DNA from: Ophelia neglecta
Lineage: Eukaryota
DNA: 64,000 nucleotides
Assembly (NCBI GenBank): GCA_965285935.1
Contig: OZ260661.1
Span: forward strand, 34,224,001-34,288,000
Direction: 5' to 3'
Made by a program: the position numbers and the translations under genes. The notes under the pieces are model-generated. The model saw only the letters and a program-made list of their open reading frames with translations, was not told where the DNA came from and ran no database searches. Positions 7,755-64,000 of the stretch are shown here, in pieces; within the stretch, counting starts at the first letter, position 1, and the number at the start of each line of letters is the position of its first letter.

Positions 7755-9203
7755 GAATGCAAATGTATAGGTAAATCATACGGCTGGTTCATTTTTATGA
7801 TATAATGCACGTGCACTGTCATTTCGACTGATATTTCCGGAAAGAAGAATATAAAACAAGTGTTTAACTGTTATTGTTATCACGAAGCACTCGTTATTGA
7901 GCCTATTCCTTTGGAATGTGTAAAAAATAGGGCAATTCGGATAACATGAAAACAGAGAGGAAATGAGTAATCAATTCCATGAAATTGGTAAAAAATGCAC
8001 GAAGAAATATATCACATCGCATTAAACTCATTCAGTAAACCTTTAAATGTGTCCATATAGTGGGAAAGTTTGAAAACATAGCTTGAAAATGATAAACGAA
8101 CTCAATCACAATGCTTGGTTTTGTCTCAAAACCAAAGATTCAAACCCCTATTGTCTGCGAAGATCCCTTACCAACAAGTAAGATGTTAAATGTGTAATGA
8201 CATGGGACATCAAAGGGGGTGTCCTTAGAACCTCCCTCCTAACAATGTCAAATTACCCTGTAATTGTAACACAAAGATCACGTCTCAGTTAATTATCAAG
8301 TCAATGCTATACGCTATTCATTTCGATCGTCTGCTCGGCGTATTTGTTTTCTCTTTGGCTTCATTTCTTCAATGTTTAACAATTATATGATAACGGCTTT
8401 TGAATGAGGTGGTATCAATCAGAAGTCGGAGAAGAACATTCTTTACAAGTGTTTTATAGCGGCGCAGTGTCGTATACATTGTCCCGCGTGGCTTATTGAA
8501 TGGGGATAGTGCTGAAATCGCGGTGTGTGGCGGGAAAGCTGTGAATAGCAGACGATATCCGGCAACTAGGGTGACGCTAGCCTCCCAAAATGGCATCTCA
8601 TGTAATTACCATGATCGGTAGAAGGCACTTGCAAACTGTCTTTCATCTTGAATTCTTTTGGCGGTGTTTTAGGTGACTTCATAATCAGACATTTTATATT
8701 TTTCTACCATAAATATTACACCTCACGAGTAAACAACGATATGTTTAATCAATTAACTGTTTTTAAGCGATATTCAGATTATGATTTAACTACATTCTTT
8801 ATAAATTATCTTCTTGTTATCGTGTTAATAAATTTGCTGACTTTATTTCAATTAATAATTCATATAATAAGCCTAGATGCCTAATGGGTATAAATTTTAA
8901 TTTTTCTAGCAGCTTAAGTATTATTTATTATAATCATACGCTCTCAGGTCTATATGTTGCTTATTTTGATTATTCTTGAATAATTAACAAGTCAACTTTT
9001 TTAATATAATTGGTGCAGGTCATTTCTTCCTAATTTAATAAAAGGCTATGTTATTTTCCTTTGTTGCCGTATGGCTTCATGATCAGGTCCTTATTCAACC
9101 CGAGCAATTTAGAATTATTTACAAATAGGCCTATTGTTAAAAAATAACCTAATTAATCAGTGGGAATAATTAACTTCAGGTCTAGTTATCATTTCAAACA
9201 GCG

Positions 9204-9209
9204 TTTATT
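9204..9209 (-). terminator. Candidate distal polyadenylation signal of copy A
   Basis: AATAAA on the minus strand about 1 kb after the stop, following a U-rich UTR-like stretch with Pumilio and miRNA-like sites. Confidence 0.45.
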
Positions 9210-10218
9210 CTGCTACATCACGTGATACATGTACACATAGGTCAAACCTTACATAGCTTTAATTTATGATAAGTTATTGCACAAATAATACACTATTTAC
9301 AATGGCTCTTTCTAAATGTATATATATCTTGGCTTATTAACATAATTTATAACATTTATCAGTACTATGTACAAATTTACACCACATTCAATGTGGTACT
9401 ATACCGTATCTGTTTTAAAAGCAAAATATCTGTTATAAAATCAGATTTCGTTTAAAATGGCACTTCAAATTGACCATACATTCTCCAAATAACAGTTTTT
9501 TCCCAAAAACGTTACTATATTTCAAATGCGGTTAAAAGATATTAACCACCTTCTGTGTTTATAGATTCTACATTATCTGCCAAAAGCGTCGTTTGGCAAA
9601 AATCGTTCAGATGCCAAAGAAGCAATGTTTACATGACATATTTATTCTTACTGAATTTTCAAAATCAATTTCATCTAATTAAGGGCCGGGACAAAACCTA
9701 CAAATCCGAGTTCTAAGGAGTCCGTTTAATTGATATGTTTGGAGAGCAAGTCACTTAGGTTGGTAAAATCATGTAAATAAAATGCGACTATTTCCATTAG
9801 CGCGCCCTGTGCCACAGTAATCCCTGCACCGAGGAAGGCCCGGGAGATAGACAAGAATGAATAGGGGTCCTTCACCAGCGAGAGATGCTCACAGTCCCAG
9901 TACTAACTATCAGTTGATAGCGATTGATAAAGTGTCTGTTACTCACTTGGTTTCACAGTGGCAGTTGGCTGTATAGTCTACCCCGCCCCTGGCTCCAAAT
10001 CTACCATAGACCGGTCTACTGTGGGTCAAGACACGCGGGAAATTAAGTCCAAAAGTCGTCTGCCGAAATGTTTTTGTTTGAAGGTGCGTCACAATCTAAG
10101 GCCTTTTGCACATCCGTTAAGTATTATTATAAAATAATATGCAGTCATTCACACAAAGTTTTCGGGTTTACTGGCACTGTAACTAGCAAATTTTATTAAA
10201 TGTTTCCTTCTGGCCCGA

Positions 10219-13712
<3,494 letters not shown>

Positions 13713-14142
13713 CGTCGTCCAGTTTTCTCTGTTTCCAGGGGTGCCACACATCTCGTCCGTACTCCCGTTCTGCTGGTTTGGTAAACTTGCCAGGGTCGAG
13801 TATATCTACCACCGAGAAGGGGGTGACACGGGGACGGCATACCTCCATCAGCCCCGGGATCTTAGGGCCGCCGGCCCGGACTAGTCCGTTCGGGGGAGGG
13901 GCAGTAGAGCACTCCCCGCTCTTGGCCACCACTGACGGGGGCCGGTCCCTCTCAGCCCTGTTCTTGTCAACCCGTAAGTCCTTTGCCTCGTTAGCGTTAG
14001 CGTTATCCCGGGGACGAGGACTGACACAGGCGGCCAGCTCGGAGCTGGTGACAGACTCCGGAGAGCCCACAGACCCTCTGTCCATATCCCCAACAGTCAG
14101 GGGAGAACGACTTCGACCTTCCTTCTCCATTCTTCCCTCCAT
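13713..14142 (-). CDS. Nkx1: NK1/Nkx1 (slouch-like) homeobox gene, copy A, coding exon 1 (143 codons + 1 nt)
   Basis: ORF starts MEGRMEKEGRSRSPL and contains the NK1-type eh1/TN motif TPFSVVDILDPGKF (13824-13783). It ends at donor GAC G|GTCAGT (phase 1), which splices in frame to the homeobox exon. Joined CDS is 954 nt = 317 aa. Confidence 0.9.
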
Positions 14143-14269
14143 AATGTGTTCACAGGTCCACAGAGCGCCTAGAAATGATCGTCAAGTCCTTCGCGCCTCA
14201 CGCTTATTGCAGACGACATTTCCAGCAGACAATTCGTGATAGTCGCACATAAATTTATTCCGATTCGCC

Positions 14270-14500
14270 AAACCAGTCACGCATGCGCTGTGGCGTTACC
14301 AAAACGGTGGCATTGGCGCATATCAAATCAAAACGGCCCTTATAGTGACATTAGGCGCTATTAATTACACGGCAAGGGGTAATTGGGCGGTGGGTTAACG
14401 AGACACCGGCCGATAGGGCTCGTTGGCCGGCACGTGTCAGTCCCTAGCATCTGTCGAGGGAGGCTGGGGATTTGAGGCCCTCTAAAAATATCGTCTGCTG
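14270..14500 (-). promoter_or_regulatory. Candidate proximal promoter of copy A
   Basis: CpG-rich block upstream of the ATG with TATA-like CTATAAGG (minus strand, ~14345-14338), TAATTA sites, a GC box and an E-box CACGTG. TSS unknown. Confidence 0.45.
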
Positions 14501-15025: not shown

Positions 15026-18000
15026 GAAATGCAAAGTCGATTAAAAACCTTATAAAAACCGGACGTCTTGCTAGGGCTATATAGATCATGATTTAAGTCT
15101 CCCCAAGTCCACGTAAAAAAATTGGTTGAAACAACATTAATTAAGTCTATCTCAATGAAGAATTAATTACAAACATGGTTTAATATTATCAGTTAAGGGA
15201 TCCATGGCTTTCTCGGTTACTCTTAATTCTTTTATAAATGAAGGATTAAAGATAATTGAGGTCTTAAAATGATTAATTCTCTTGAAGACCCTAAAAAACA
15301 TGAACCGGGCCTGTTCGTCGAGTTTCTCCATGGGCACAGGCAGGCATTAACTTAATGGGTGTGCCGAACCCTCCAACTACCCCCCCCCCCTCCACTCCCA
15401 CCCTTATTCCGCTGTTGGTCATGTTAGCCACAACCTTTTTAAAGTCCAAAAATTGATTATTTATGTTTTTTAAGACATCTTAGATATATCCGCCACTTTG
15501 AAGACCAGGGGGTAAATATTGAATATATAAATTGACAGCAACTTACGGCCATTCATGTTACCGAGATGAAACAATATAGCTCTCGAACCTACAGTATACG
15601 AACAAAGCCTCATTAAAATGCGAACTCATTGGATCTTAATAGCATGGTGACAAACCAATTTTCATTTTCCTAATCATGAAAAATAACTATTCGCTTGTCT
15701 TGTTTACTTTTTACGATGGCTGAAACATTCAGTTTTTTTGTGAGCGCTACAAAGGAAAGGTTAGCCTGGTTTATTTTGCCTCAATGTGTCATAGTTGCCG
15801 GCTAAGTCAGTTTGTGTTGTAAGACATTGTGCCTAGAAAATCTCCAGAGCAATTTCTTCCGAGGCAGCTCATGTGGAAGAAAAATGACTCCTCTTCTAAA
15901 CAATGACTTCTGTATAGTTTTCCTATTCGAAGAAGCGTTTAGCCTGTCTCGCTGCAAATTGCAAGCTAATCTATGCAATTAAGAGCAGCTTAGTTTGGAC
16001 TCGGAAACAGGAGCAAGTGTCAAAGTGGTTATGAATTATACAAAGTGTTCCACACAGTCTCGGCTGCTCGGGTAGTGGCGGATACAGATTTTGACGTTAA
16101 ATCATCTGAAAGCAGACGACACTGCCACATAAAGACAACTGCGTCCATTGAAATTCGCGAGCGTTCAATTATGCATGGATGTGGAAGGGGTGAATTAATT
16201 GTTAGTGAATATAGCCGACAATCAAAGGAAATATTGTTACATCGCCATCTGCGAGAGTTTCCTCATACAATGAAGAATGGCGGTCCTTGTTTATCTTTCA
16301 CAGATTTGCGGCACACATAATGCGACGATTACCGCCAACTGAATTAACTTTACATCCGAAAATTGTCCATAAATCCTGTTTGCCAATTTACATGAATAAT
16401 TCCTCCGTCGTTTGCCATTTCTCTGAAGAAATTATAGAGCGTTGATCCCATTATGGCCGGATTGAAGGAAAATGGTGGAAGTATCATCTGATTATCTATA
16501 ACGTGACACTAGGCACTCGGCCCACTTAGAGTTATTTGAGACGGCCGGTGTAGGGGAACACTTCATACAGGGAAATAGGCGAATGCCAGAACTTGGTTAC
16601 AATATGACGAGTCAATAAATCACTGGGGGTGAAATAATGATTCTTTACTTCAAGGTATCATAGATTAGGCTATGGATATAAATTTGTTAGGAGATGCTAT
16701 ATCAAATATCCATCATTTGTCTATGTATACATCTTGATATAGATATATAGGTTTAAGAAAATACTATTGTATATATTCAAATTGGTAAAATGCTATATAC
16801 CTGATACCTTCTTGGACTTATGGTCAAAATAAAGATTTGAAATTAACTAATTGTTAGTCAGAACAATAAGGTTTTACCATATCAACCCCATATGAGCCAA
16901 TATAGGCACACTATTTTTTTTAATAAAAAGTGTAGATATATGTAGTCTCGAAAGGTATATAGTTGATACATAATAATATAGCCATTTTAGTTATTATATA
17001 TAAAAACTAAAAAAATAGTTTTATACCTCCCATATTCCTATATATATAGATACTACATGGGACTATTTGAACGGGCGTAGGCCTATAGGCCTGTGACCCG
17101 CTATGATTTACTGTTGCCATTCAATAAAAATACATTTTTTTACATTTCTCAACACATTAGGTTGGCTATCGAAATGGGATTCTAAGTCACTAAGAGCTTT
17201 TAAAGAAAACATCATGGAAGCAACTCAATCTGCTTAAAATCACGAAATTCGATCAGGCTGTTTTCAATGAGTCTTAAGCAGTTATTGACGTAAAAAATAT
17301 AACCTCAGAATAAAATTGAAATATAGAGTCATCCCACCTGCAGCCCTGTCGGCAGCCAGGCTTTGATCTCGATGCAGGTGAGTCGTATTATTACCACCGA
17401 CTCTCGCCGCGAAGGTGACTGAATTGTCCGGGAAGCTGGGTGCAAACAGCCGGGTCTGTCCGCCATTAAACCTATTTGAACACTCTAGTTTATATGCTAG
17501 TTCCGCGCTTTTGTCGTCAATATTTAGTGAATTACGACTCAATGGGGTAAATTGAAGCGGTGTAAAAATAGCTATTAATTCGATACGTGCGTTTTCATTT
17601 CATTTTAAAATGTGTACACAGTAATTTTACCTCGATATAAACTCAGTCCGAATGGGCGTTCAAATTTGTTACTATCGGCGCGTGACACTAGTGAAAAGCT
17701 AAGGATGAACCGCCGAACGGTCCTTTACAACCTTATAATGAGAAAAGAAATGAAAATCGCCTGAGAATATTTATTTAGCAGGCTCTCGAGAGATGAAACG
17801 GATAACAATTTGCAAAGAAGAGTGACATTTTCACCTCGCTGGCAGAATTTCAAAGCTAGTCAGTGCGAAACCAAATGGAGAAGAATTTTTTTCTAGCCGT
17901 AAGCCTTGCTTTATATCTTTCTTGAGTACAGTCACTATTAAAATATATCAAATAATGGATACTGTTAACATTTATTAGAAAGCATGTGAATTTTATACTT

Positions 18001-18703: not shown

Positions 18704-21700
18704 GTGGGACCAAGCTAGCGGTATATTCCTGACTGTTTACATTTCATTAATTTGTTAAATGGTGAAGTATTCACTGTTAATTGTTGATCATTGCTAGTTA
18801 AGTTCGGTCCTTTGCCTCCCTGTGCTTACCAACCGGACCGTAAAATGTCCCCATAGGACGCAGGGACAGTATTCATATCAATTTGTCTGTCAAGTACTTT
18901 GAAGTCACACTACTTCCACCCAAAGGGGTGATTCTAGCTTATGATTATCGGCTATTGTCATCTGATTTTCATGCCTTTTGACTTTCAAAGGTTTGAAAAC
19001 GATATTGCAATCGGAGTATTGCCTTTTATTCAGAATACTACGCCAAGCAAAATGAGATGTTCAAATCATAATCGTTAAAAGCTTACGACCGCTCGTCTGT
19101 CAAACCTCATTATAATGGCTGATAAAATCCTTATAGGCCTTAAAATCTTACTCCTTTCAAAATTATGCTAATATGGGTCCAAACTGAGAAGTTTTTATCA
19201 GAGAATATGCGTCACAACAAGGCGTGTTGAGACAGAATACTGTAGGGAATTTATGCCGATTGAAAACGAATCATCCTTTAACGTTTTTCTATATTTATTA
19301 TTATCAAGACATTTGATACTTTAAATCCCGATCATTTGGCGTTGCCTGATCTGCGCAAATAGTATCTTGCATGGGTTTTTATCGCTCGACCCATGGGGTA
19401 GTTAACTTTACAAGCAGTGTACATAGTTGTTTAAATCAACGATTTTCTTTTATTCCATTTTTTCCACACGCACGAGAGTACCAAGAAATCCACAGCAAAT
19501 TGACTGATTTTCGACTGACAGCTTGGTGTCACCAACCATTGTTTGGAAACAAGGAGATGCATAATATGTCACCTGATGATTTAACCTAGCACGATGGACG
19601 GTACAATGGGAATCGATTTGAGCCCCTCTCAGGGTCAAATAGGTCAAGATTGTTACAGGCAGACGATAAAGAAATCTCGCGGGAAACGCCAACTCATCCT
19701 GTGAATAGTCCAGCCTCTTTTTGACACTAGCTCACCATTTCTCATTAGCCAGACTAGCCCGCGTGACGTTACATAAATAGAAAGTGAACTAAAAGACTAG
19801 GTGATCACGGGAGCGGGCAGGTAGTCGTGTGGGAGACAATGCCCGAGGGCAGACGACATGAAGCCCAATTGTGGCTTGTTGCTTCACCAGCCGCCGCTGT
19901 GTTTAGAGACTGAAGTGAAATCGTGTTGAAGCATCGCCCAACCAGAAGGGTCTATCCATTATTTAATGATACCGGCCGCTTGTGATCAATTAAACTCGGC
20001 TTTTAACAAGGCCGGCATGTTCGCGTGTTTGTCGTGAAATCCATATTCATTTAGGCCATCTTGTCGGCGACGAAAATGAGCCCCGCAACTAGATTTCACA
20101 AATATTGTACTTCCATTTAGGTAATTGGGAGTTGATATTTAATCTTGTGTTAAAATAACTGTAGCTTCGGGAGATTACTGGCAAGCCATCAGTGGGCTCG
20201 TGCCAGCCACGGCTTCCCTTGACAGCTTCACCGAATAGTTTAGTGGCTAATTTCCTAAACCTACAAAGCAAATGACATGTACCCCGTTATCAGTGTTGTC
20301 ATTGGAGGAAAAAAATCGTTGCTGCATTTACGTCACTTTCAGATCCCATTTTATCAAAGGGTTGGCGTTCAAACAAGTAAATAGGAAATAATTAAACTAT
20401 AAAAAGCATATAAATTGCCCAAAACAGCGCCCACATGGCTTAATTATAAAACTACGAGTTGTTTAAAGTTTGAGGATCCTGGAGCAAAAACTTGCCAAAT
20501 GTTAATTGCAACGTAATTATATAATTAGTATAATTAGTGTAAATATGCCAGTATATGATATCGCCTCAAAGCTCTTGCATAATGCATAGCTTATAGATAT
20601 TAGATGACAGGACACCCACATCGAACCATAGGGTCATCATGGTATCACCTCTATATAGACATTAAGTCTCACTTTAAGGTGAATGTCCATAACTAATAAC
20701 ATCATATCTAAGTATATATATATCTAATAATTTATATAGTATTAAACATATGTCATAGTTTCGGTAACGAAACTTTCTGTTATTGTGATGTATGTGTTAT
20801 TGAGTAATTAAGTAATTAATTAATCTATAAACTCATCAATTATAGATATTGTTTTTAACAGTTTTGACCATTAGGCTATATAACCCTACTGGCTCCGGAG
20901 TTGATCAGGACAAGGGCGCAGTTCATTTCATTGTGGTTTGTACACTAACTTCCGCTTGATGATTTTGGCCTTTCCATCACAAAAAGCCTATGTAAAGTTA
21001 GAGCCAATCATCTATAGTTAAAACCGTGAAAAACTGGATACTCTTACAGGCCCATGATGCCGAAAGATACATCCATCTATTTCTGAATAGAAAAGAATTA
21101 GAACTACTTTTCTAATCACTTTTAAAAGTCAATCAGAAATTAGGGCAGTCTTATTCTCTAGATAGAGAAGTTCATCGGAGGCAAAACCGTGTTGTGCTTG
21201 CTCTACCAGTATACCAGCAGATACAAAGTTCCCGAGGCTTCGCTCAATAGCGTGGCAGCAGTCCGTGAGTTGAGTACTGTGCCCAGATTGAGCCGAGTTC
21301 TCCAGGCTTAGCCAACCTATCAAACCTGCCATCGACCTCAATTACAGCTAATTTCCAGGTCCTTCGATAGCGGGCTTGCCATTGTCGTCTGCTCAGTGGA
21401 ATAATTGGCCACGTGGCCCGCGGTCGGCTGCCACGAGAATAGACGAGAATGGGGCCCAGTGAAGGAAGCCGGGAATGGGCTCGGTTTATGGGGCTGAGAA
21501 GCAGGACAAGGTAGCCCTAACAAGGGACCAGTCAGGGACCAGTGCGGGGCAGTTGTGAGAAATATCGTCTGACATTTTTTTTCTTCAGAAATACGTTGTC
21601 ACCATATGAGACCATAAGATATCTTTTCCGGCTTTAAATAGAATCATGAATAGAAGTTTTTATATATGTGACTGAGTTAATGGGACAATCACCATATTAA

Positions 21701-22937: not shown

Positions 22938-23115
22938 CAGTGAAACCTGTGAATTAGGACCACCAAAGGGGCTGGAAAATACTGGCCTGATTTCGGAGGC
23001 GGTCTGTTTAGACAGGTTATTTAACATTAAAAGCATACAGCATGGTCCTTATATTAGTGGTCTGAATTGGCAGGTGGTCTGATTATAGAGGTGGTCTTTA
23101 AGGCAGGTTTCACTA
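22938..23115. mobile_element. MITE family 1 copy 2
   Basis: CAGTGAAACCTGTGAATTAGGACCACC...GGTGGTCTTTAAGGCAGGTTTCACT followed by TATATA; aligns end to end with the other two copies. Confidence 0.87.
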
Positions 23116-26100
23116 TATATATAAAGAAATCTGCTAATTAATGATCAGAGTGATGAGGTTTTCATGGATGATCCCTGTTTGGCACAGTAATATATCGGCA
23201 TCACTGCTGAAGCTCCCCCTTATATCTATTATGGCACAGCGAGAGAGAAAGGGGTTTACCAGATGGAGTTCAGGTTACTATGCAGTTATTCCGATACAAA
23301 CATAACACCATTTAACTTTCGGAACATTGTCATTTAAATAATAATAGTTTAATAGTTTAAATATTTGTCCGCTAGAGTTGGAGGAGAAGATGTGGATAAA
23401 TCTTTTCGCAGTGACATTGACAATTCAACTAATATCACTCCAGTTAAGGAGGTAGTATATATGTCAGTGATCCGAAAAGTTGGGTTATGTCCGTGGGCAC
23501 ATAAACAGAGTGCATACTGAGAGGACTATATGCTTCTCCAAAAAATTATTTATTTATTATATTTCATTTATATTTATTAACTAGTTCATACAAGCTTGGC
23601 CGAAGCAATGGCTTATGCTTTGGTACCATTTGTGTAAGAATAGCGATGTTATTGTGGCTAATGTGTGATAAAATTTCAAGGGCCGCTCACAACCCTTCAG
23701 CCTGCAAACCACTTTATCTTTGAAGCATCCTTGAGCCAGGATCATATAGGAGCCCAATCCATTACATTATCGCCCATTGTCAGCTCATTGGCCTCGGTCC
23801 TTACTTCTTTGGCGAACTAATCAATAGATTACGTCGATCTAATCGTGAATCGGCCCTCAGACAACACCGCACCGCGGAAGAATACAGAAGGCATCCCAAA
23901 TTGGTCGGCCTTTGTGCCCCTTCGCGGGGAGCTATCTCAAGCAATTTACTAGTCAGCCGATGCCACATTGAGATAAATTCCACAATTAGCCAATAATCGT
24001 TGATTGTAGAGAGGCCATGGCCAGGATCAGATTCCGTGCCTCGCTTTCTCTTCTGCATAAAGAAGCTTTGAATACAGTGACTGAAAGGGCATTGCAGTAG
24101 CTAAAATGGCGCGTTTATGCTAGGGCCAGACGATAAACCTCAATAAACCGGGAATTTTGCAATAAATTGATACAAGTAATCAGCAGGATATATAGGCGCG
24201 TTTATGAACACCAGATGAAATAGTTTGACGTAGGTGGCGCACACTTTAATGTCCAATATACCCGATGCTCCGAAAAGAAAAATTGGCAAGTAATAACCTA
24301 GCACTTTATAATGTTTGTCAACCATTATATTTTACTAGTGTGATGTTTTCATGCCTTAAGTCGTACTTTAGCGATTCTGAAACGGATATTATATTGCCGG
24401 CGTATTTGCAGACAAATGTATGGGCAACTTGAGATATGTTTTATATATTTAGCATCTGCGCCAGCTAAAAATACTGTAAACACTTGTACTAATAGGGTTT
24501 ACTCAAAAAGAGTCGAATGCCATAGGTAATATCATAAATGGAGGCGAATTGCCAACGCTGGCGGCAGAATACGAATTTCTTTCTGGTTTTGTCCGCCAAA
24601 AGCGATAATATTAATGGTGTCTTTTCAATGTCCAAATTGGTGTTTAAGCCACAAGAAGGTGTGAAGAATTATTCAAAGTGTGTCTAGCTTTCCGCCTTGA
24701 AATGCTGCTAACCGGCGAGTAATTGAGATAACAATTTAGTAAAGATTAGAACCATTTATCGTTTTAAAAAGGAACAAATTTTATTGTCGACGATTTGCTA
24801 CCGGTTTTGGCTGCTATTCCCCTTGATCCTTTGCGAACGTGGCCAAAGTAAGCAGGTTTTGTTTTCTTTCAATTACGTCCGGTAGCAAACCCTGATAGTC
24901 CGATTATGCTAGTTAAATGCATGAAGTATACAGTCGACAGGGGGTTCGCCCATTCATGATATATCAATATTTATATACTGTATCCAATCTGCGCCGCCCG
25001 TTGTTAATCAAAGCAGCCGCACGAACGCCAAACGACAGGGCAACAGTGACCAGAAACGTAATGTTTTTCTTGGTCATCCTGTCGCGGTTCAACCATGTGA
25101 TCCTTTTAATTATAACCAAATGGCTTATAGACAGGGTACAGCTGGTCTCCCTGTGTCGGGAAAAAACACCCCCGGGCGGTCACAGGCGAGACCACACTAA
25201 TACGTGATTGACACTAAAGACCAACATGGATACTTAATAATTAGTCTAAAATATACCAACTTTCAAAGGGCGGCCAATTCAACTTCTCCACGCGCACTAT
25301 TTGTTGTTAAGTGGATATGTATAACTTCATTCTGAATAAAAACGTGCGGCGGACTATAGATAGCATGGGGATGTTGCCGTTTTTGGTGGTGTGAGTAAAG
25401 TTTGAAAGATTCTTATAGATATACCAACTATTGTTAGAAAATGAAATGGAGAAAATAGTTCCTTAATCATGTATGATGCTCTTCTTTGATTTCACTGTTA
25501 TTTGAAGCTCTTTCGACGATTTCATTGACAATTATCGGGACACTTTGGTTTCTATTGTGCCTCCCATTTCTCGGCTACTGTGGCTAAAATGTTGAAAGAA
25601 ATACCAACTGGTGTTAAATTGACTTAAATCGGGTTTGTTTTGATTCTATCAGTCGGTAAAAATATAAAACATTTACCCGATGGCAACCATGCCAACCACA
25701 CAAGCTATCGTGGAAGAATCCAGTTTTCAGTTCAAACACTGATGATAAAATGAATTCGAACCAATCCCCAAAACCGTCATATGTAGACTAAAGGTTAGAC
25801 CTTCGTTGAAAAAATGGGGTAATATCGCTTAAGTAAAATTACTCACAGTTAATTGGTTTGCATTAAAATCATACAATTAAAATGTTAGCCGCAAAGAAGG
25901 ATGTTCTGACAGGAGGCTGATGTCCCGTCGCACCTGTGCCAATATACCTGAGATTCATATCAAAGGAAATAAACCTCTCCTCCTCACCTGCTCAAATCTA
26001 TAAAACCTAGCCTACCAAAATAAACACCACCGAGTTTATACCCCATTAGTATATATAATTCTCAGTTTTGTGTCATTGTTTGTTGTATAATAGACTAATT

Positions 26101-30487: not shown

Positions 30488-30665
30488 AAGTGAAATATGT
30501 GAATTAAGGCCACCCAAGGGACTGGAAAATGCTGGTCTGATTTCTAAGGTGGTCTGTTTGGACAGGTTATTTAACATTGAAAGTATACAGCATGGTCCTC
30601 ATATTAGTGGTCTGACTTGACAGGTGGTCTGATTATAGAGGTGGTCTTTAAGGCAGGTTTCACTT
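30488..30665. mobile_element. MITE family 1 copy 3
   Basis: AGTGAAATATGTGAATTAAGGCCACC...GGTGGTCTTTAAGGCAGGTTTCACT; the 3' half is nearly identical to copy 2. Confidence 0.87.
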
Positions 30666-45600: not shown

Positions 45601-48059
45601 ATATCAAATCTTCACTCGGCTATCTCTCCGGGCGTTCCTTGTAAGTCTAGGAGAACCTATAATGAGGTTTTTATATCTATGGACCCCACAGCTTCTCTAA
45701 CTAGCTGTCAGGCCGGCCAAGTCGAGATTTGTTAATCCTCTCCCAGAGCATACTTCAAAGTCGGCTCACTTATTCACAGGTGCCTTCGTAAACAAGCAAG
45801 GCGGCTAATTTAGTCTCTGATCCTAGACAGGTGCTACCCCTTGCCACCCGGTAAAATGGCAAATTAAGGCTAAATGTTGGGGTATGCTCAGGTAACATTT
45901 ACTCAGGTAAAAACAACAGTTTATTGCATAGATAAAAAATAAACCTAGCTTAACCACGCGTGATTCATGTGATGTAATATGCACACGGGGGTTAATAGGT
46001 CTATTTTGCGCCTCGTTTTGAATCCGAGCGGAAGTTAGCCTTATTCCGCGCAGCAACTATCCATCTATAATCCATCTCCATTCTGTAATCAGGGTTAATA
46101 TGTGGCGTAATTACAAAGATGGTCGTAATAAAACAGAAATATTCCATTTAACTTTTATTAAATCTTATATGATATATGTGAAGTAACAAGCCATGCATAT
46201 GATTGGCAATTTCTGGTCACATAAATTCATTTATGATGTATGATTAGCCAATCTAACGCAACGGTTTACTAATACCCACAGCTGCTGACAATTTGCGAAT
46301 CATCCTTCAGATAAATCAGATAAATCTCCCAACTTAACGTCTTTTCCAGGTGTTTAATCTAAGATATTAAAACAATATATAATATCATTTTTAAGTCATG
46401 TGTCTCTGAACACCTGCATCTGATTAATGTATAAACTGGAATTTAATTATTACTTCGAAACTAATTTATACTGGAATTAGATCATTTATGTATGAGTCGG
46501 AATATCTTCGGACTTAATCATTGTAATGTGGTCAGATCTAGTCCCAAGCCGAGGATGGGGTGGTTCTGAAATTTCGCTGGTGAAAATTTTAAAGTGTCCA
46601 GAGATTTGGCTGGCTAAGATATATACCATGCCTGCCGGTCGGCACTGCAGGGGTGAGGAGCATTGACAACGGGTCCTTAAGCCATCTGTAGAGGCCATTA
46701 GAGTTGTGACTATTCAAATATATCCAGATAGAACAACATTATCAGCCTTTCACATTGCGAACATTTTTATAATCAAAATAACCTGTATATATTGTTAATT
46801 CAGATTTTTAAGCCTGTGTCAAAATAATAAATGAGCATTTCTGCACCCCAGTAATCGTATAAATGAGTAAACCTTAAAATTTCAAATGATTTTTTTGGTC
46901 ATATGACTTTTTCGGAATACGCAATACGCCTTCTTTATGCAACATATCTTTGGGGATCCCCCAGGGAGTGTTGGTTAGGGGCTGATTGAGGGGTGAGGTG
47001 GACAGGGGTGGTGGAGGAGAGGGGCAGGTATGCTATGAATCTGAGGGGGTATAAACGGTGTGAAACTAGCTAGAGACCTAACAATTCACACACTTTCCGC
47101 CTTTTCGACAAATAAATCTGCCAGTGGTGACAACTTTATTTACTTTAAAACTTTTATTGTCTTCTATACGACAATACATACTACAAAATAGTTCGATTAA
47201 TCGGTATAGTGTCAGTTGAGAAAATCGCATCGATTATCACCAGTATTTCCCCTTTCTTGTTTAAACTAACCAGATTCTGAATAACCTGTTTAACGGGCTT
47301 GTCTCTAATTTGTGAAACATAATTTAATCAAGACACCGTGGTGTAAAATTTTCCTGAAACAAGACGTGTTCTCATGTTCAAAACGAATATGAGCAGCTGA
47401 CAAGCCTTCCTGGAATTGTGGTAGGCAGAATTCCTTTGAAGATTAACCCGTGGGCCCAGAACTCACACAAAAAGTACTAGCATATAACACGGAGTTTCCG
47501 AGTACATGTAATATCGTTCAGGCCTAAACATGATCAAAGGCACTCATAACTTTTTATAAATATCTAAACCGACCTTACAATTTAATTGAGAAGCGACTGA
47601 ACTAACACTTCAGCTACCATCAACCTGGCGGAATTTATTTCGGCTCGACATCTGCCCCATTTGATGTAACACTAAACTCATCTACGCGCCGCCATCATAT
47701 CTTTCGACAGTTTTTGCCTCGGGGCCATTTCATTTCTTAACTACCTAGAAATTCCACGGTTATCGAAAGGTGCCACACTCGTGAAAAACCGATCACCGCG
47801 CCTCTAACCTGTCACATCTGGCAAGGTGCATTTCAATTCATCCCTTAGGATTAGTGAAGGATAAAGTGAGCGATAATCTGTGCATTGGATAGTTTAAAAT
47901 GGCCGCCAGGCAACCAGGCAGAGCTATCCCCGTAATTAATCGCTAACAAATTATTCCAAGATAATTTCACGCCCAGATGCGAAACACATTTCCCTGGTAT
48001 TTGCCTCGATTGAAATAAAGAACTCGGTACATAGGCCTAGGCCTATAAGCCATGCACAC

Positions 48060-48090
48060 GTCTGTCTGTCTGTCTGTCTATCTGTCTGTC
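48060..48090 (+). repeat. (GTCT)n microsatellite, ~7 units with one interruption
   Basis: Direct reading of the sequence. Confidence 0.9.
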
Positions 48091-50627: not shown

Positions 50628-50633
50628 TTTATT
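50628..50633 (-). terminator. Candidate polyadenylation signal of copy B
   Basis: AATAAA on the minus strand about 0.9 kb after the stop, followed ~30 nt later by U-rich TTTGTTTTCTTTC. Confidence 0.5.
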
Positions 50634-51514
50634 ATACAATATTCACAGAATATCCTAATTAAATATACAAGATTATACAACTCACAAATATTACAACTTG
50701 GCCGACGTCAAGGTCAACTATTTTTAGCCAGAAGAGCGGAAGTCAGAGGAGAACACAGTTCCGGTATAGACCTACATTATAGTTTCTTCATTTTGAATCA
50801 CCATATTAACATTCATATTAGGTCTCATCTTTAAATAATTGTTGAAAATATTTAACGATCACCATTAACATATTGTCTGTAAAAAACCATGTGAAAAGGA
50901 ATTGTGCTATGGCGAAAAGCGGATTTTCCACACCATACAAAAAAGTTCACCAATAAAAATAAGAAGGGGTGAATATTAGAGTTTCATATTAAATAAGAGT
51001 CTGCTGATTAAATAAAAGATATTTTCATATAATGATAATCATAAATATTTAAATACATAAATAGAATACCAAAGTGCTTATTGGATAGTCAAACAAGCAT
51101 AAAATACTTCAAGCCTGAGGTATTTCTAATCTAGAGATTCGGCTTTTTGTCAATAATCTACAGTTATGAGTTTAGTTCATACTTTCAGAATATTTACACC
51201 ACAAAACTGCATCCGCCTGTATGTCAGTCAAGCGACCAGCCAATAGGTCTTACTTTGTTTAATTAGAAATAAAAAGCAAGGAATTTCAACCTACATGTTA
51301 TAAGCACCCAGTTATTTTCCTGCGATCCACTGGAACACAGACTTTGTATACTATCAATTCAGTTTGGTTATTTACATTAACAGAGTTTTCAGTCTAAAGC
51401 GCTCTTGTTCTGCTTGCAGCTCAAAATTGTTCCTACAAACTTTCCTTTTTGAAAGTGTTTTAGCAGACGATTTGAGGAGCATGGTTAGAGTATTTGTTGG
51501 ACACCGTTGATCGA

Positions 51515-53521
<2,007 letters not shown>

Positions 53522-54113
53522 CTAATTCTTCAATATCCTCCTCGTCGGTTTCATATGATCTGTCAAGTTTGTTTTCTCTCGTCAGCGTGCTGTTATTATT
53601 GTCAGACGATTCGGAATCCGATGACTTTTTATTGCTGAATTTCACAGGATCTAAAATGTCTGCCACGAAGAATGAGGTAAACCTGACCCCCTGGCCGACA
53701 CTTGGGGCCCTTTGAGGGGGGTTAGGGGGTCGCCTGTCGTCATTGTTTGGTGAAGTGCTCGGCACGGGACTCGGTGGACTATGATTGTGTGGAAATGTCC
53801 GAAATCCTGGTGGACTTGAGCTAGAGTTAGAGTGAGGTGAGACCGACTTGGCGGCAGACTTGCTGAGATTTTCCGGAGACGGTAGCGGCGATCGGGATCT
53901 TTCCCTATGTCGGCTGCCTCCCACTTCCTCGCGCTCACGATTAGTGTCCGAGGAGTGATAATGTCCTCCAAACTCCTCCCTGAAACTCATCTGCTCCCTC
54001 TTATTCCTGAAATTTTCCATCATTCTAAGTTCTTTCTGTACTAACGACACCCTTCTTTCCATGCTCGTAGGGCTCATTGAAGCCTCTCGTGTCCGCAGAC
54101 TGCTGACATCCAT
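53522..54113 (-). CDS. Nkx1: NK1/Nkx1 homeobox gene, copy B, coding exon 1 (197 codons + 1 nt)
   Basis: First in-frame ATG at 54113 in good context (AAGATGG). Contains RERSRSPL and the eh1/TN motif TSFFVADILDPVKF (53678-53637). Donor TTA G|GTAAGA (phase 1). Joined CDS is 1092 nt = 363 aa. Confidence 0.88.
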
Positions 54114-54279
54114 CTTAAATAAATTCGTAAGCAGTAAACATTGGAATTCTGTGTGATACACAAGAAATCCGCGAAGCCTCTGCTCGGATGCTGCCAATAG
54201 AGATAGTGGTCAAACGTTAGAAGATATTCCCAAATGAAGATCTGTCACTGGTCTGATGTCTTCAACTTGGATGCTGATA

Positions 54280-54670: not shown

Positions 54671-57600
54671 ACTTCCATGCTCAGCTTTATCTTTGCTATT
54701 TCCATCTTTTGCTTCGATTTCTTACTCTATAAACTGGTAAATGACATAGCAGAAGAATATTTATTTATCAACCATTCGGTCAAATGAATAACCACTCAAA
54801 TTTAACATGTTATCGAAAACAAGATATGAATCATCGAAAGCTTAAATGAATTATTTACCAAGAATGTAAGATGAATGATTCGTAATTGATTTTATTTCCA
54901 TGCAAATACGAAACAGCTCGTTTCTCGTTCTGAAGGAACTATCTTAGAGAATCAGCCGTTCTCTACCATCAGCCGAGTTCCACCACGTTATCCCGGTGAG
55001 TTTCCTATTCTTTTATTATCTAGCAAGAAATAATTGATAAATAAGAAACAAGAAGAATCTAGAAAGAACCAGTCACTTTGTAGAGATTTACATCGCGACC
55101 ATAGTTCTTGATGGCCAGATGAAAATTTAATCCGAGCAGTGCTGCTAGCCATATGAGCAGATCCTTAGCTGATAATCTGACAATGATAGCTGGTTGAGTA
55201 AGATAATCATGGGATTACCAGCGATGATCCCAGAGCAGTGTCCGTGACCAGGAACCGAGAACCACATAAATCTCGCCAGGCCCTGCCAACAACTGAAATT
55301 GAAGTCGAGAATATTGCACAACTTATTCCCGACTCAGCATGCCTGCTTTCTCACGTTATTAATGGCTTATCGGGGTATCATCAAATTAGAAGCGTTTACT
55401 GATAAATTGAGAGTCGGAATTGGCTTTAAATTACACAATTAGATGGGGTTAATGAAGAGTAGGCCAGTTGACACTTGTTTCCCTGAAGGGCAATTCGTTG
55501 GTATAATGTTATCGCGGTGATTTGACATGGTCCAATAGCATCACAAGAGCCGGTAAGATGGACGCAGTCGAGCCGACTGCGGCGGGAACCTATAGGACTT
55601 GAAAATCGGGGCTACTTTAACCTTAGCTCATTCTTATACAGTTATTTATTATATACTGGCTTATTAATGAATGCAGTGCCCTTTCTGGACAAAGTCAATC
55701 AGGAGGAATATCCCTAAAACGTAGCTTGATTGGATGACTATAGATCGTCTTGCTAGCTCTATTTAGGAGCTCGGGTTAGGAGCTTGTGAGTCGCCCAGCT
55801 CAACAGAGAGGGTAAGGTATTTGCCATTCTGTCAGACTCTAGCGATGAGGCAGACGAATGACTTGGCAAGCGGTTTAGACGAGTTAATAAGTCTTACGTC
55901 TTACAAATAAGGGCTTAAATTCCGATAAATCGAGCCAAATCTAGACAGGTTCCGAGAGTTGAATGTGACAGGTGAAATGACGTCACGCGAGGTTTTGCGA
56001 GATACGGCGTTATTTGGTAAACAAACATTGCAGATAACGTTTGGCGATTAACTGCGGTAGGAATTGCTACCGCATCTGGTAAAGTCCTTACCCGCGGAAA
56101 CACAATCTGTAACGCATTTAATTAAATTGTTTTCGCAGGGCGCTGTGCTGATAATTATCCCAGACTTGGAGCACATCAACCTAATTGATTAATCTTAATT
56201 GTAGTGCAGCACAAACCAAAGGCAATATTTAGGCATCTTATAATAAACAAGGTCTCGCCATTTTCTAACCACCAGTCTGATAAGGAAAGCTGTTGGAAGT
56301 CCTTTAGATAAGAATATGAGAAGATTTCAAAAGTAGCCACTGTAAACGAAACTAAATCTAGTTAAGACGTGTTGAAAACAAACTTTTGATTAAACTGAGC
56401 TCATGCTGTTTGTGTATGTAAAATAGATCAAATTCATTGGAAGTTTCATCAGGTTTTATTGGAAAGCGGTGATAATCAGTCGAACCTGCTGTTTGCAAGC
56501 GCCAAGTTGATGTCTTCTGCTGTACAGCTCAGCAAGAAAACAAATTACGGCCTTTTGATTTCTTTTGAAGGTGACAAACGGTTAAACAGTTCTCAATTAT
56601 GAAGTATAACCAGTTTACGAGTTTACCAATCATGCTTACATAAATAATTTCTACAAAGAAAGTGTGTCTAGTTCATAAGCTATAAAATGTTGTCATTTCA
56701 TTTAGGAGGAAATAAAGACGTCATTATCAAAATGGATTGTTTTTAAGGCACCCTCCTTCAGAGAATTACAACATTGAATTAAATGCTATTGTCCTCTATT
56801 TAAGAGTTTGATGGCAACAGCAACAGCCTCTGTTGATGCCCCATCCCCCCCCCCCTCCCCCGACATGCGTTCAATGGGATAAGAGTACAGTATCTCCAAA
56901 CAAAACCATGTTTTATTTGAGAGGCCTATTTCAATACATAAACGTTTTTAGCATGAACCGCTATGTATAAAACCCTTTCACCGCCATTTATTTATTTTAC
57001 GTTGGTAGAGGACTAGCAAAAAATCCATCACCCTTCTCCCCCTTCTCTGCAACCCCCCCCCCCCCCCTCCCCCACCTTCCTAGCCATCTTTTAAAAGAAA
57101 ATATAAAAATATATAGTCTGACATATTGATTGAACGGCATAAATATAATATATTGGGATCTGGCGGGTGTAGATAGCTAAAAGCAACGTGTAGTAAAGTA
57201 TCGTGGAGGGAACCAACTTATAATGTTCAGCATCATTGGAGTTGAATGTAAAGCTCACTTGATACACACTTTGTAGAAATCAAAGGGATTTGTGGTCTGC
57301 CGACACCTATTCTTATTTACGAAGTACATTCTTGAGAGGACAATATAGGTATGTAATATTTACCTCAGACACGTGGTCAAAATCAGTTAAAAGATTGAGG
57401 CAACCGGACGCTGTCAGGCTTATACCACCCCAAATGTGCGTGAAATTTGTATAATATGTCCAGGGCGGCTCATAGATTGATCTTTGATTTACATAAAGGC
57501 ACCAACACGTGTTGAAACTTCCCAAGGAAAATATCTCTTCTCTTTGAACCCCGGCGATTGACATCTCCAAACATATAGATGATAAAGTCAATATTTAGAT

Positions 57601-58697: not shown

Positions 58698-58929
58698 TAA
58701 AGTGTCTCTGGTGTCGCAGTCAGAAAGTTGATTAATTGCGTAAGTTTAACTGCGTGAAAAACCACACTAAGCACATGTGCAATGTGTATATTTAAACTGA
58801 AATCTGGACTTTCTGTCTTTTTTGGCAACGATATACACAGTTTCATATGTGAATTAACAACATAGCACAGTCGGTAAAGTGTCTCTGGTGGCACACTCAG
58901 AAACATGATTAATTGCTCGGTAATTTAAC
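58698..58929 (+). repeat. Degenerate direct duplication (~55 bp core, 177 bp apart)
   Basis: TAAAGTGTCTCTGGTG..CA.TCAGAAA..TGATTAATTGC at 58698 and 58875. Confidence 0.8.
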
Positions 58930-61900
58930 GAACATAAATATACCATACTGATCGCTACAACGCCACGACAATGTGGGAACCTCAAAAGTTTCCACAAAAC
59001 GGCAAAAGATCGCACACGTCGAGATGTTAAGGTGTTGATGGTAACCGCTATGGGTATAGCAATGAACACCATCATTTTTAGAGCATTAATTAATTCTAAA
59101 GGCTACAATGCATTACGAATTTGCAGCTATAGATTCGTAGGTCTAGAGCATAGTTCTTCTTCGAATGAGTGCTCAATGACTCATGAGTATTTCAATGAAA
59201 ACGTCAATGCCGAGCAAATGTTCAGATAAAAGATTACCAGGAACGTAAAAAAATGATATCAATTAGTCTATGTGTCTTTTAGAATGATAACCCCAGCTAG
59301 AGCGATGTATTTTAACAGATCTCGAGCTATTGAATGTAAAACCAAGCATGGAAGACATCAGTTTGCTCCCAGAGCCGTACCAGACACCATGGCGATAATA
59401 TAAGACTTACAGGAATCTGCCGAAATTCTTAAGGTGGCACTATCAGCAAAGCGAAACAATAATTTCTGACTCTAGCTTTCACCACCCCATTAAGAATGCG
59501 AAATCTTCCATTAAGCCCGATTAAAATTAATTAAAACCAAAGCGTTTAGCGTTCATTATCGTTTAAAGGCACTGAAGGGTGCCGATTCGCACATTTACAT
59601 TATCTGAGCCCTCAGGGCATTGGGGGCAAATTGTTGTTGAAGTCCCGCTGACATGGCCCCCAGCTTGTGTATTTTTCTTGTTTTCAATCTGTTTCGGATT
59701 GCCGGACCGTGAGAACACTTGTTTCATTTGTCCAAATATGCTTGACCGTTAAAGACAGCGATTAGAAATTAATTGTTTTGAGATACCGCACATATCTAAA
59801 CCTGGCACCGAACATGTTTAAACTGATTTTAATAAAGGTTGACTATGGACGAACATGTTGCTCACTGACCATGGCAATATCAGAGTGTTGAAAGGCAAGA
59901 TCTCGTCCGTGTTTACCAATTTGTTTCAAATGTTGCGCTCCTAATTTAACGCACTTGAATCAAAAGGCTAATATATTAAAATTGTGTTATCATAAGAATA
60001 AAATAATTTGTTCTTGCTTAATTTTAGATGCCTGACATTGTCACAGTGTGGCCTTTCTGTTGGTGGGAAAAGTTCCCATGAAATCACATACAAAATCTCA
60101 GGAGTGCATGCTTACTGACGGGGAGGCGTTCTGAGGTGTTGGCAGATGGGTAAATTATCCAATTCATAAATTTTTTGATTATATTATGTCGCTGTGAAAG
60201 GATATATATAAATATCGGTTATGTCCAGGCTAAACTGCTTAAATTATGGATTTAGGAATCATAGCTATGCACTTATCATATATCTGATATATAAATATCG
60301 CATCTAGCTAATTCATCTGCCCATTAGTGTGCAAAAATAATGATATTCCAAGTTTACCTTAAAATTATTGATAATCCTATACCTCTGATGATGTCACAAA
60401 ATTGACATAATCAGGTTTTTTTTTCTAAACATGACGTCACGGTGCACCCTAAAAGGCCAATTAAGCAGTAGGCTACCTGTAAGTTTTTTTAATGATAATA
60501 CAAAAGCATAATTTTGTACCACATGGTATTCAAGTATAGACCACAGACAATGGATTATGTCTAGGACAACGTTTTCCTTAATTAAGAGCTTAGGTCTATT
60601 ACAGTCTTCTTTTAAAAAAAAGACTAATTTGTATCGTGAGGTCACAGTAGGCTATTCATTTATTGGCCAGTGAAAATAAAATGTAGTGGGCCAAACCCGA
60701 AACAAGATATTACTTAATATCCTAGAAACCACAGCTGCCGCGGTATATATCAACTCTCCACAGACCGTACGACACACAACATACATCCAATACGCATATA
60801 CAATAAACATTATGACAGCGATAAGATAACCAGTGTTTGATCGCAACGATGTGATTTCATGGCTGTTGAAAACCATAACTTTCTCGCTGCTCGCTTTGAA
60901 ACCAAATCTTTTTGGTTATTAATCTCAATACTCGTTTGATTAATGACGGTGAACATTTGATTGGCAGCGGCTCTCTCTTCATTCCCTGCCGTTATTAAGA
61001 TCAATAAAATCAAAGTTAATGACACCGAAACAGCTATTATCGTCGGAAAGAAGTTTATCCGGGGAAATTGCAGCAATTAGCTTTAAGATTGTGCGGTTAT
61101 GGCCGAGTGGGCGAGTAGACAAGAGCCTCGCTGTGGAAGCTCAGGGAGATGACGCTTTGACAAGATCCATTACTCCGCGCAGCGCCCGGATCACTGTGTC
61201 GTCTGCCGTGTTTTAATTGCCTGCCTTGTTTTCTGTTAACCTAACGGCGTTACCTGTCAAAACAAGCGACTAAAACGCCGCCATTAGATCGCCTGAATGC
61301 TCCCGGAGGGCTAGCGGGAGGGTACTACCACGTTCTGGCAAATACCTTCTCTTTATTGATTCTGGTTAAAGGCCCGACAAAACACAATTTGATATTCTGG
61401 CGAATATTTCTTTCAGGGGCTGATTCGAGCTTATGAAGGGATGCAATATACCTAACCTTTCTTTCGTGATCATGAAGCGACTAGTATCAGGGCTATTCTA
61501 GCTATACTTCGTTTTGTGAAAGGTCGCCTCAAACACAAAGAGAACAGAGGTGTTTTAGTTGTCTAGTTTATTGAGGCGAAGGCTTGATAACAATAATGGA
61601 AAACTATTTCTAACCATCGCACTTCACTTTAGAGACAGTCGATAACTTGGTTACTGCACGTATGATTTCTGTGTCATAGTATGTGTAAACAAAAGTTAAT
61701 TTTGATCTAGTCTCACAAGCTGGATAGACTACACCTCCCTCTTATCAGTGTCCGTTGACCCTAAGGCACTCCGGTCGGAGCAAATCGCCCCTTTCCCAGC
61801 GATAGTCGGGACATGTGTTGACGTCACTTCACAAGGACCCGGCCCTCCATCACTCCTCAGCCCACGGAACAAGCAGATGCCCCGGGGCAGCAGGCGAGGT

Positions 61901-64000
61901 TTTAAACAGCATAGCGGAACATATTGGCCAGGATAGGACTTATTGGCGGAACAAATGGGGTGGCTGGGCGAGCGGCTCGCAGGCAGTTAACATGGATGGA
62001 GGAGAAATTAGGGTTAAGAAAGGAGAGTGATTTGTACCGTATTAGGCGATGGATCATCTCTTGCAGAGGTGAAGGAGGGTAGAGGGTGACTGGGGCCGGC
62101 GGAGCCGTGGGGGAGGAGATGGCCGGCCCTGAGGGTCCCTAGCAGGAGCAGGCGCAGGGCAAACAATCATGCTCGCCTGCTGCCCACCCCCTTGGAGCAT
62201 TTTCAAACGCCATTTTGAATGTTTTTTAAGCCAACGCCAGTGCAAATCTTACTGCGCGGGGTTCAATTATATGGAGACAATTACTATATTGCTCGAGGCA
62301 AACTAAAAGACAGTTGTCACTTTTCCTCGCCTGGCGCCTTTTTTTCTCCCTGAAATGCGACACTAAGCTGTTACACTTATCATCAAATTGTCGTCTGGCT
62401 TCAGTTAAATCGATTTTTCAAACGCTTGCTATGTACTTGTCAAATGAATCTCTGACAAACATGAGTTGACAGCAAACTATTTCATCTAAACGCAAGTTTC
62501 CGGTGTTGAAAATCACAGCCAATTACATAAACGTTGGCGCACGCGCTTGTCGATCTCGTCTCGAACGAGAACTGCCGACGACAGACGATTGCCAGACGCC
62601 TCAAACTTCTGGTAACCATCATTCTCGCGCTTCCTTCTCGCGGCTGCGAGATCTGGGAGATCACGACCGGAAGTGGGGTAACTTCTAAAAGCTCATCTCA
62701 TTGGTGCAGATGTGGAAATAATTAAGGACGCGCGACGCCTTGTCTGATAAGTCTATTACTACTTGGTGATTTTCACCAGATTTCTACCAAATCTGGTGGA
62801 CGCGTGTACCATTTCCACCATTAACAGCACGTGGGGCCTTGGAAAAAGATTTAAACACCGGTTATCTGTAGCAAAGCTGTTAAACAGATGCATCCCAGGC
62901 CTTCGTTTAGTATCAGACAGGTTTGCGAGGAACAGTTAATTGGTTACAGCTATAGGTAAAACGGGAACGCTTGTGTCTCATCGACAGCCACCCTACAACA
63001 TTATTGGAATGAAGTCCCTTCATTAACTAAACTGATGTATGCCTGGTCTTTACAATGTTATAAACAGCAACACAGAACAATAAATCTCTCGCTCATTATT
63101 TTATTTACTCAGAGCAGCCGTAGGGAAAAAAGCACAGAAAAATCTCTATCTGTGAAACTAAGTTTCAAAATTTATTTTAAAAACATGTTGTGTTTAACTT
63201 CATACATAAATCCTGGTGTACGTGACACTAAAAGTGACAAGAAATCACGTAATTGTTTTGGGGTGACTTGTGTTGCTAATGGAGCAGACGAGCGAATGAG
63301 AATCACGTGACTTTGGCGCCCCTCCCATGGTTTTACGAACGCCCCCTGGTGGCTGACACGTGCACCTGCCACTTCTAGCCGCCAATTCGTAGCCGGAATG
63401 CGTCAGTCCTGGCGGGAATACATAGCTCGTCTGATAGCTCTCGTTAGGAAACATTTTTATATCAATTTATATAATCAATCATATCACCTCTGACAAATCA
63501 TAGGATGTTATAATGTAGTAGTATTTAGTTATGACGGTGGGCTTGTCGCAGTATACCACAGTAATATCAGAAAATACTTCTATTCCAGGGTACTTAATAA
63601 TGCATTTATTTTTGACTCAGACAATGATGGTGCTATATCACTGCTTTTCTCCCACAGTGATGACTTTATAAAGTGATGCTGTGGCGACATCTGCGGTCAT
63701 TCAGTTAGACTATAGGGTATATGTAAAAAGCTCTATTGTGTAGATATTCAGTCATATTTCTTCAAATATTATTATTAAGCGAATTTTAGTTGTTATGCTT
63801 ATTTCCCAGAAGTTTAGTTTGGTAGATTAGTGAAGTATAAAGATAAACAAATGCCTGCTGCTCCCTAGGATTTATAAGCTGGGTCCGTTCGAACCCCATG
63901 CATGTGATCCAGTTTTGTAAGTAGTTCGTTAGTAGTGAGGTAACTGATTGCCCACGACATCCTGGGCAGATGATAGTTGATTGCGACACCATTCACAGCG

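Follow-up and report, generated by a model that had tools for sequence, protein, structure and literature searches.

A 64-kb stretch of the Ophelia neglecta genome (C1:34,224,001–34,288,000 of the 762-Mb assembly; hereafter the window, with positions counted from its first letter) carries two NK1-type homeobox genes on the minus strand, and a short DNA word recurs around and between them, with the exact 10-mer form GCAGACGACA and the 8-mer core GCAGACGA. NK1 copy A lies at 10219–14142 (homeobox exon 10219–10695, first exon 13672–14142; Pfam homeodomain score 83 bits) and copy B at 51515–54197 (homeobox exon 51515–51883, first-exon open reading frame (ORF) 53490–54197; 81 bits). Over 209 nt their homeobox exons share 77% identity, and both genes presumably belong to the NK1 class, as judged by the NKX1 homeodomains.

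The exact 10-mer is found on the plus strand at 14209–14218 (67 nt before the ATG of copy A), 16112–16121 and 32446–32455 (both AGCAGACGACAC), 19849–19858, 32228–32237 and 36957–36966, and on the minus strand at 21383–21392, 29958–29967, 43602–43611 and 61197–61206. The remaining 8-mers lie on the plus strand at 8548–8555 and 19659–19666 (both in the GCAGACGATA form), 39033–39040, 51463–51470 (45 nt downstream of the copy B stop codon), 55850–55857 and 63284–63291, and on the minus strand at 8327–8334 (followed by TC), 10056–10063 (156 nt downstream of the copy A stop codon, in the probable 3′ untranslated region (UTR)), 14491–14498 (again the GCAGACGATA form) and 26917–26924. One more 8-mer (38282–38289, +) forms a divergent inverted pair at 38252–38291 with a one-mismatch site (38252–38261, −) across a 20-bp unrelated spacer. 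The original prediction, made from the letters of the window, had listed these 10-mers and 8-mers, and we found every coordinate and strand correct; its seven near-misses (11548, 21565, 24126, 33649, 38252, 62389 and 62581) are all one-mismatch variants, and its statement that sites fall near the copy A ATG and in both 3′ UTRs agrees with the distances given above.

With 10 copies of the 10-mer and 21 of the 8-mer, the window greatly exceeds dinucleotide-preserving shuffles, which gave a mean of 0.03 for the former and 0.88 for the latter, with no shuffle coming near the 8-mer count; the expectation first put forward was about one 8-mer and fewer than 0.1 10-mers. Allowing one mismatch yielded 24 matches where 2.0 were expected. 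When all k-mers of the window were scanned with low-complexity words excluded, the word was the top over-represented 9-mer and 10-mer. A genome-wide count, which the original prediction had proposed, showed that density is unequal: the 10-mer occurs 7,634 times in 762 Mb, or about 10 per Mb; 64 kb would then be expected to hold 0.64, and the window with its ~156 per Mb stands about 15-fold above the genome average. The 8-mer occurs 26,791 times in the genome, and the exact word is about 5 times commoner than its average one-mismatch neighbour. Since the reversed word AGCAGACG overlaps the motif, we used an independent one-CpG control word of the same base composition instead; it has 511 copies and its reverse 270, making the motif 15–28 times commoner. 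A literature search on the word and its reverse complement returned only primers and unrelated oligonucleotides, and no paper describing the word.

To define the word itself, we aligned 41 sites from 264 kb, comprising the window and 100 kb of flank on each side. The consensus is RGCAGACGAYA, an invariant 8-bp core with two to three partly specified positions: R at −1 (A 17, G 14), then GCAGACGA, Y at +1 (C 18, T 16) and A at +2 (21 of the 41). Beyond R-GCAGACGA-Y-A no base is conserved, the information content being about zero at all positions of the ±20-nt flanks. No repeat family overlaps any site, and an Rfam scan of the window gave no match. Pairwise flank identity is at the chance level except among three sites just outside the window, which occupy a homologous coding position in three tyrosinase paralogs and represent one event; apart from this trio, the flanks are unrelated, as had been claimed.

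The sites belong to a motif-rich domain with limits at about −21 kb and +108 kb in window coordinates (C1:34.203–34.332 Mb), which includes the whole window (1–64000). It holds 38 8-mers in ~130 kb, about one per 3.4 kb, and GCAGACGA ranks first among all 8-mers by dispersion over the domain, occupying 25 of 33 four-kb bins where 4.6 would be expected. Of the exact 8-mers in the 264 kb, the domain has 38 and the remainder 3, compared with 98 and 67 one-mismatch variants; the exact word is thus enriched 12.7-fold inside, but the CpG-keeping one-mismatch variants only ~1.5-fold. The domain is a transposon-poor block with an observed/expected CpG ratio (CpG o/e) of 0.8–0.9; its flanks, with a ratio of 0.4–0.7 and almost no sites, abound in retrotransposon ORFs of the Ty3 and LINE types, and the domain edges match both the CpG o/e step and the retrotransposons. 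CpG retention alone is not sufficient, however, because the interval +132 to +156 kb, where CpGs are also retained, is devoid of sites. Locally, the sequence within about ±250 bp of a site forms a bump rich in GC and CpG (GC 0.46 vs 0.41), 39% of sites have a CGCG within 70 bp compared with 17% of GC-matched controls, and 25–28% of the GC-rich bumps, which are ~500 bp long and module-like, carry a site.

Arrangement rules were also considered. Pairs at ~200 bp spacing were rejected as a rule, close spacing not being significant (5 gaps of ≤300 bp vs 3.1 expected, P 0.2). A preferred dimer geometry was likewise rejected, because the spacers of divergent pairs (24 places) differ widely in length and are unrelated to one another, and the convergent pairs mostly represent one transposon palindrome. 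As for the orientation bias or border pairing of an insulator or architectural (CTCF-like) site, strands are mixed along the domain and the close pairs show no preferred geometry once that palindrome is set aside.

We then asked whether the enrichment recurs at other homeobox loci, as the original prediction had suggested. On C1, sites were mapped by splitting the word by its flanking bases and homeobox exons by Pfam PF00046; the complete AGCAGACGACA set on C1:0–96.87 Mb, to which the following counts refer, comprises 371 sites, or 3.83 per Mb. Ten collinear same-strand homeobox exons at C1 60.50–61.10 Mb form what we infer to be the Hox cluster, and this region has 26 AGCAGACGACA sites vs 2.16 expected (12-fold, P 1.5e-19), an enrichment that was predicted before the Hox counts were looked at. 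On the same measure the NK1 domain is enriched 12-fold (6 vs 0.49). Split by the next base, the Hox subsamples with C (11), T (7) and G (6) are individually significant, while that with A (2) is not. Within ±25 kb of the other homeobox exons there are 22 sites vs 3.73 expected (5.9-fold), with 11 of the 17 intervals hit, so that the expected homeobox enrichment was borne out both at Hox and elsewhere. Of the ten 150-kb windows on C1:0–97 Mb that are densest in sites, six contain homeobox genes; these include a cluster at 22.84–22.99 Mb, where a single strand has nine or more exact 10-mers. Sites are clustered in general, 34% having at least two neighbours within 50 kb vs 6–9% in null models; the control word is not clustered, with one copy in the 264 kb and none in the Hox cluster.

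At C1:60.50–61.15 Mb, AGCAGACGACA is followed by C 11–13 times and by A twice, whereas genome-wide the next bases are about equally frequent. Elsewhere on C1, same-strand runs of the motif occur at regular or near-regular kilobase spacing (C1:21645947/21650027/21654075, C1:96816121–96868111 and C1:3512985–3531364); the pattern suggests that these are copies inside tandemly duplicated units, a minority class apart from the dispersed sites. Fox, Sox/HMG and T-box genes were tried as the cause of the other dense C1 windows and discarded, since the overlap was zero and C1 has no Sox or T-box gene.

The word also occurs in a transposon. Convergent motif pairs, found at 53 places in the genome, are dominated by one palindromic element with two 21-nt arms, each GCAGACGAC followed by TACCAATATAAC, whose copies differ only by central deletions or filler. 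About 30 are arm-to-arm palindromes with differences at the centre only (e.g. C1:72247076–72247117, C2:7132582–7132623 and C5:53804746–53804787), which are candidate micro-elements or excision footprints. The same arm bounds elements of ~567–585 bp at no fewer than eight places (e.g. C1:77051895–77052479), and one arm pair 3.9 kb apart (C5:22803914–22807835) is a candidate full-length copy. The arm has 117 copies genome-wide, equal to 0.4% of the 8-mer sites, and none of them adds to the 10-mer count, since the arm has T at a position where A is preferred in the dispersed sites. In the 264 kb, the sequence after the word never follows that of the arm (GCAGACGAC then TACCAATATAAC): the best of the 41 sites matches it at 6 of 13 positions. 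Being few, outside the 10-mer count and absent near NK1, the arm copies cannot explain the enrichment. Descent from a known repeat family, named in the original prediction among the things that would overturn it, thus failed on three counts, as no site lies in a repeat, continues like the arm or, the tyrosinase trio apart, shares flanks with others.

Other words share the domain. A Pho/YY1-like core, CGCCATTT, is present 11 times in the window vs 2.38 expected (0 of 100 shuffles reached 11), at 1160, 2894, 24104, 32128, 33828, 39957, 49233, 54651, 56256, 56982 and 62208, and 22 times in the domain vs 5 outside. The CpG-free palindrome TAGGCCTA, often in the form ATAGGCCTAT, is the second most dispersed over-represented 8-mer, with 29 sites in the 130-kb domain vs 5 in 134 kb of flanks. 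It occurs at 358, 3378, 3448, 4503, 9126, 12724–12815, 13654, 17078, 31932, 43463, 48032–48045, 49887 and 58225, and also in flank pieces L009–L012; it is sometimes doubled with an 8-bp or 6-bp offset, and the DNA around it is unrelated and AT-rich. It lies no closer to GCAGACGA sites than chance, and may be another site that marks the region, or else the footprint of transposon excision. A 183-nt dispersed repeat (3676–3858, 22939–23121 and 30489–30671, also in L009 and L003) contains AGGTGGTCT (Gli-like GACCACC) two or three times, at a smallest distance of 17 bp, and accounts for the over-representation of that word. Several high-scoring 8-mers of the domain were discarded as dispersed words because they all derive from one tandem array at −15 to −10 kb (L009 ~5000–10000), in which CGTAACGC reaches 23 copies and CGCTTCAC 34 in one 5-kb bin. 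A degenerate 40-bp tandem repeat, whose units contain CCCTTAAAGAAGTGTC, spans 6689–7758 with at least eight copies.

Just right of the window, within the same CpG-retaining block, are a Fuseless-family gene and a tandem tyrosinase group (flank pieces L012:659–4058 (+), L012:7348–8463 (+), L013:5683–6714 (+), L014:4681–5424 (−) and L019:9280–9999 (+)). The retrotransposons that bound the domain (L004:858–6587, L004:8346 to L005:4075, L007:2283–5861, L015:2407–5928 and L017–L018) include two tandem Ty3-type copies with long open pol ORFs (1,483 and 1,358 amino acids), LINE-type endonuclease–reverse transcriptase (RT) ORFs and further RT and integrase ORFs, in DNA with a CpG o/e of 0.4–0.7.

From these sequence comparisons we conclude, with moderate confidence, that RGCAGACGAYA is probably a selected cis-element, the putative recognition sequence of a single, highly specific DNA-binding protein by which developmental-gene regions are marked. 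The exact core, the unrelated flanks, the unenriched one-mismatch forms, the CpG-rich bumps and the replication at Hox and other homeobox loci all argue for a selected protein-binding site. Several observations weigh against this conclusion. Enrichment in the Hox cluster varies among the subsamples (A and C differ at P=0.003), and some Hox copies might share a longer motif or a local context. The control word, in small numbers, is itself ~2–3-fold enriched near homeobox genes, so that part of the homeobox association is generic CpG retention. Dense C1 windows at 32.04, 24.9 and 21.6 Mb have no homeobox, Fox, Sox or T-box gene; another at 96.8 Mb also lacks these classes and, with eight copies on the same strand, is suggestive of a tandem unit. 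C1 has five Fox genes, which show no enrichment and of which one alone has an adjoining site. Within the domain, the sites have no preferred spacing or orientation, being on both strands and mixed along its length, and CGCCATTT is not near GCAGACGA beyond chance (4 vs 1.8 within 150 bp, P 0.10). The right third of the domain spans the Fuseless-family gene and three tyrosinase genes, and only 8-mer forms, no 10-mer, are found there. Hence the "NK1 landscape" of the original prediction was right for the sites of the window and too narrow for the enriched domain, and its sequence-specific factor marking a developmental domain gained the Hox and homeobox enrichment it foresaw, while the purely NK1 domain was lost and part of the signal went to generic CpG retention.

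One alternative is that the pattern is a by-product of composition, an unmethylated and transposon-poor region preserving any CpG word better than its surroundings. The coincidence of the domain edges with the retrotransposons and the step in CpG o/e from 0.4–0.7 to 0.8–0.9, the behaviour of the control word near homeobox genes and the domain preference shared by TAGGCCTA and CGCCATTT are what such a process would leave. It does not account for 10 copies where local-dinucleotide shuffles give 0.03, for the ~1.5-fold enrichment of CpG-keeping variants beside 12.7-fold for the exact word, for a control word with one copy in 264 kb and zero in the Hox cluster, or for the CpG-rich stretch at +132 to +156 kb without a copy, and we regard it as largely refuted and very improbable. 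The copies could instead be the legacy of a mobile element, with the word as the terminal-repeat tip or transposase site of a DNA transposon and the dispersed sites either relics or bound by the transposase or a domesticated descendant, without a host regulatory role. The palindrome of two 21-nt GCAGACGAC arms, recurring genome-wide with a variable centre only, the ~580-bp elements bounded by the same arm and the pair 3.9 kb apart speak for it. Its 117 arm copies, however, face 26,791 8-mers and contribute none to the 10-mer count, and no site in the 264 kb continues like the arm beyond 6 of 13 positions. The word's presence in an arm is also weak evidence, because, where a genome has many terminal-repeat families, any given 8-mer should turn up in one of them; by our own estimate, one such family is expected by chance among thousands. 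Nor would relics be expected to stay exact over 8–10 bp with one-mismatch forms unenriched, or to be concentrated 12-fold in Hox. We consider this origin unlikely, if less so than the compositional one. Given the shared 9-mer, the word's reader may still be related to a transposase.

The main rival is an ordinary enhancer-level site for a transcription factor or pioneer factor, each copy lying in a separate cis-regulatory module of a developmental gene, comparable to the Zelda heptamer CAGGTAG of early fly enhancers or a Smad-cofactor site, so that the pattern would reflect the number of modules. It fits the position of sites on ~500-bp module-like GC-rich bumps, 25–28% of which bear one, the lack of both a spacing and an orientation rule, the CAGAC embedded in the word, and an enrichment that is graded across loci rather than all-or-none. 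On the other hand, an invariant word of 8–10 bp is unusually information-rich for a tissue-specific enhancer factor, it is dense at loci of very different expression logic (Hox, NK1 and tyrosinase), the C1 Fox genes are not enriched, and no partner site is conserved. We give this explanation a real though clearly minor chance, well above that of the two preceding ones.

If RGCAGACGAYA is such a selected site, a single factor would read it. Given the CpG in the core, its binding would likely be methylation-sensitive, the sites being usable only in unmethylated developmental regions. The factor might most likely act on the chromatin state of the region, a step that, taken on its own, we hold as tentative; it could recruit or stabilise a Polycomb/Trithorax-type state, keep the region unmethylated, or tether or insulate it. 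Region-wide action is suggested by sites that pepper whole regions rather than forming one element per gene, by their even scatter of ~1 per 3.4 kb over 130 kb and over ~600 kb at Hox, and by loci that are classical Polycomb targets. In its fullest and more speculative form, which we think rather doubtful as a whole, the word would be a sequence address: a lineage-specific protein would read unmethylated RGCAGACGAYA every ~3–4 kb and thereby establish or maintain a Polycomb-type, unmethylated state in the landscapes of Hox, NK and other homeobox genes. This reader might be a domesticated transposase, as a live transposon family has the same 9-mer in its terminal repeats.

How DNA sequence targets Polycomb-type or unmethylated developmental regions is an open question outside flies and plants. 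An exact 10–11-bp word, over-represented 15–28 times genome-wide and concentrated ~12 times at Hox and NK1, offers a concrete handle on it: it can serve as bait in pull-downs, predict how far a region extends and be mutated experimentally. In this genome it also helps in practice to find developmental regulatory landscapes. If the address interpretation is true, a non-insect invertebrate would have a recruiter element for its developmental regions that is defined by sequence, and if a relative of a transposase reads the word, it would clearly exemplify a mobile-element DNA-binding module co-opted for genome architecture.

Among known systems, the Smad-binding element is CAGAC/GTCT, and bone morphogenetic protein (BMP) response or silencer elements follow GRCGNC-N5-GTCTG. 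Compared with these established consensus sequences, the word contains CAGAC at its positions 2–6, but its invariant core is 8–10 bp and not 4–5, and it has neither the palindrome GTCTAGAC nor a GC-rich Mad-type site at the fixed 5-nt spacing. Because the flanks carry no information, there is no Mad partner at fixed spacing; of the Smad link originally proposed, the embedded CAGAC and an extension longer than a Smad site remain, while a partner at fixed spacing does not. Drosophila Polycomb response elements are clusters of Pho (GCCAT), GAF, Cg, Sp/KLF and other sites. They share with the word the same class of targets (Hox, NK and other homeobox genes), and a Pho/YY1-like core is over-represented in the window; however, they are few discrete elements built of several short degenerate motifs, whereas here one long exact word occurs every 3–4 kb and not close to Pho-like sites. 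Region-marking words are known from the fly MSL recognition elements, the MEX/rex motifs of the Caenorhabditis elegans X chromosome and the Zelda TAGteam site CAGGTAG of early fly enhancers. The likeness is one of analogy, in that density rather than a single copy sets a class of regions apart and all were first found as over-represented words; their sequences, factors and targets differ, and they mark a chromosome or a time window, whereas this word marks autosomal developmental landscapes.

A proposed Prospero/PROX1 site, TAAGACG, as cited in PMC2826315, has AGACG in common with the word, 5 of 10–11 positions, and differs at the 5′ G-C-A and the 3′ A-Y-A, a resemblance at chance level. BED-finger proteins give another comparison: the human DNA replication-related element (hDRE) of DREF/ZBED1 is TGTCG(C/T)GA(C/T)A, the Drosophila element (DRE) is TATCGATA, and BEAF-32 binds CGATA (PMC7471704). 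The 3′ half of the word, CGA(C/T)A, equals the hDRE half-site, the C/T choice included. The word is not palindromic, however, since its 5′ half is GCAGA and not the reverse complement of the 3′ half; its centre is GACGA, and it has neither the central TCG(C/T)GA needed by ZBED1 nor the DRE TATCGATA. DRE and hDRE are also sites of housekeeping promoters, whereas the word is dispersed through developmental landscapes. Two further likenesses are that BEAF-32, a boundary protein, binds short sites in clusters, and that BED fingers derive from hAT transposases, a transposon here having the word in its terminal repeat.

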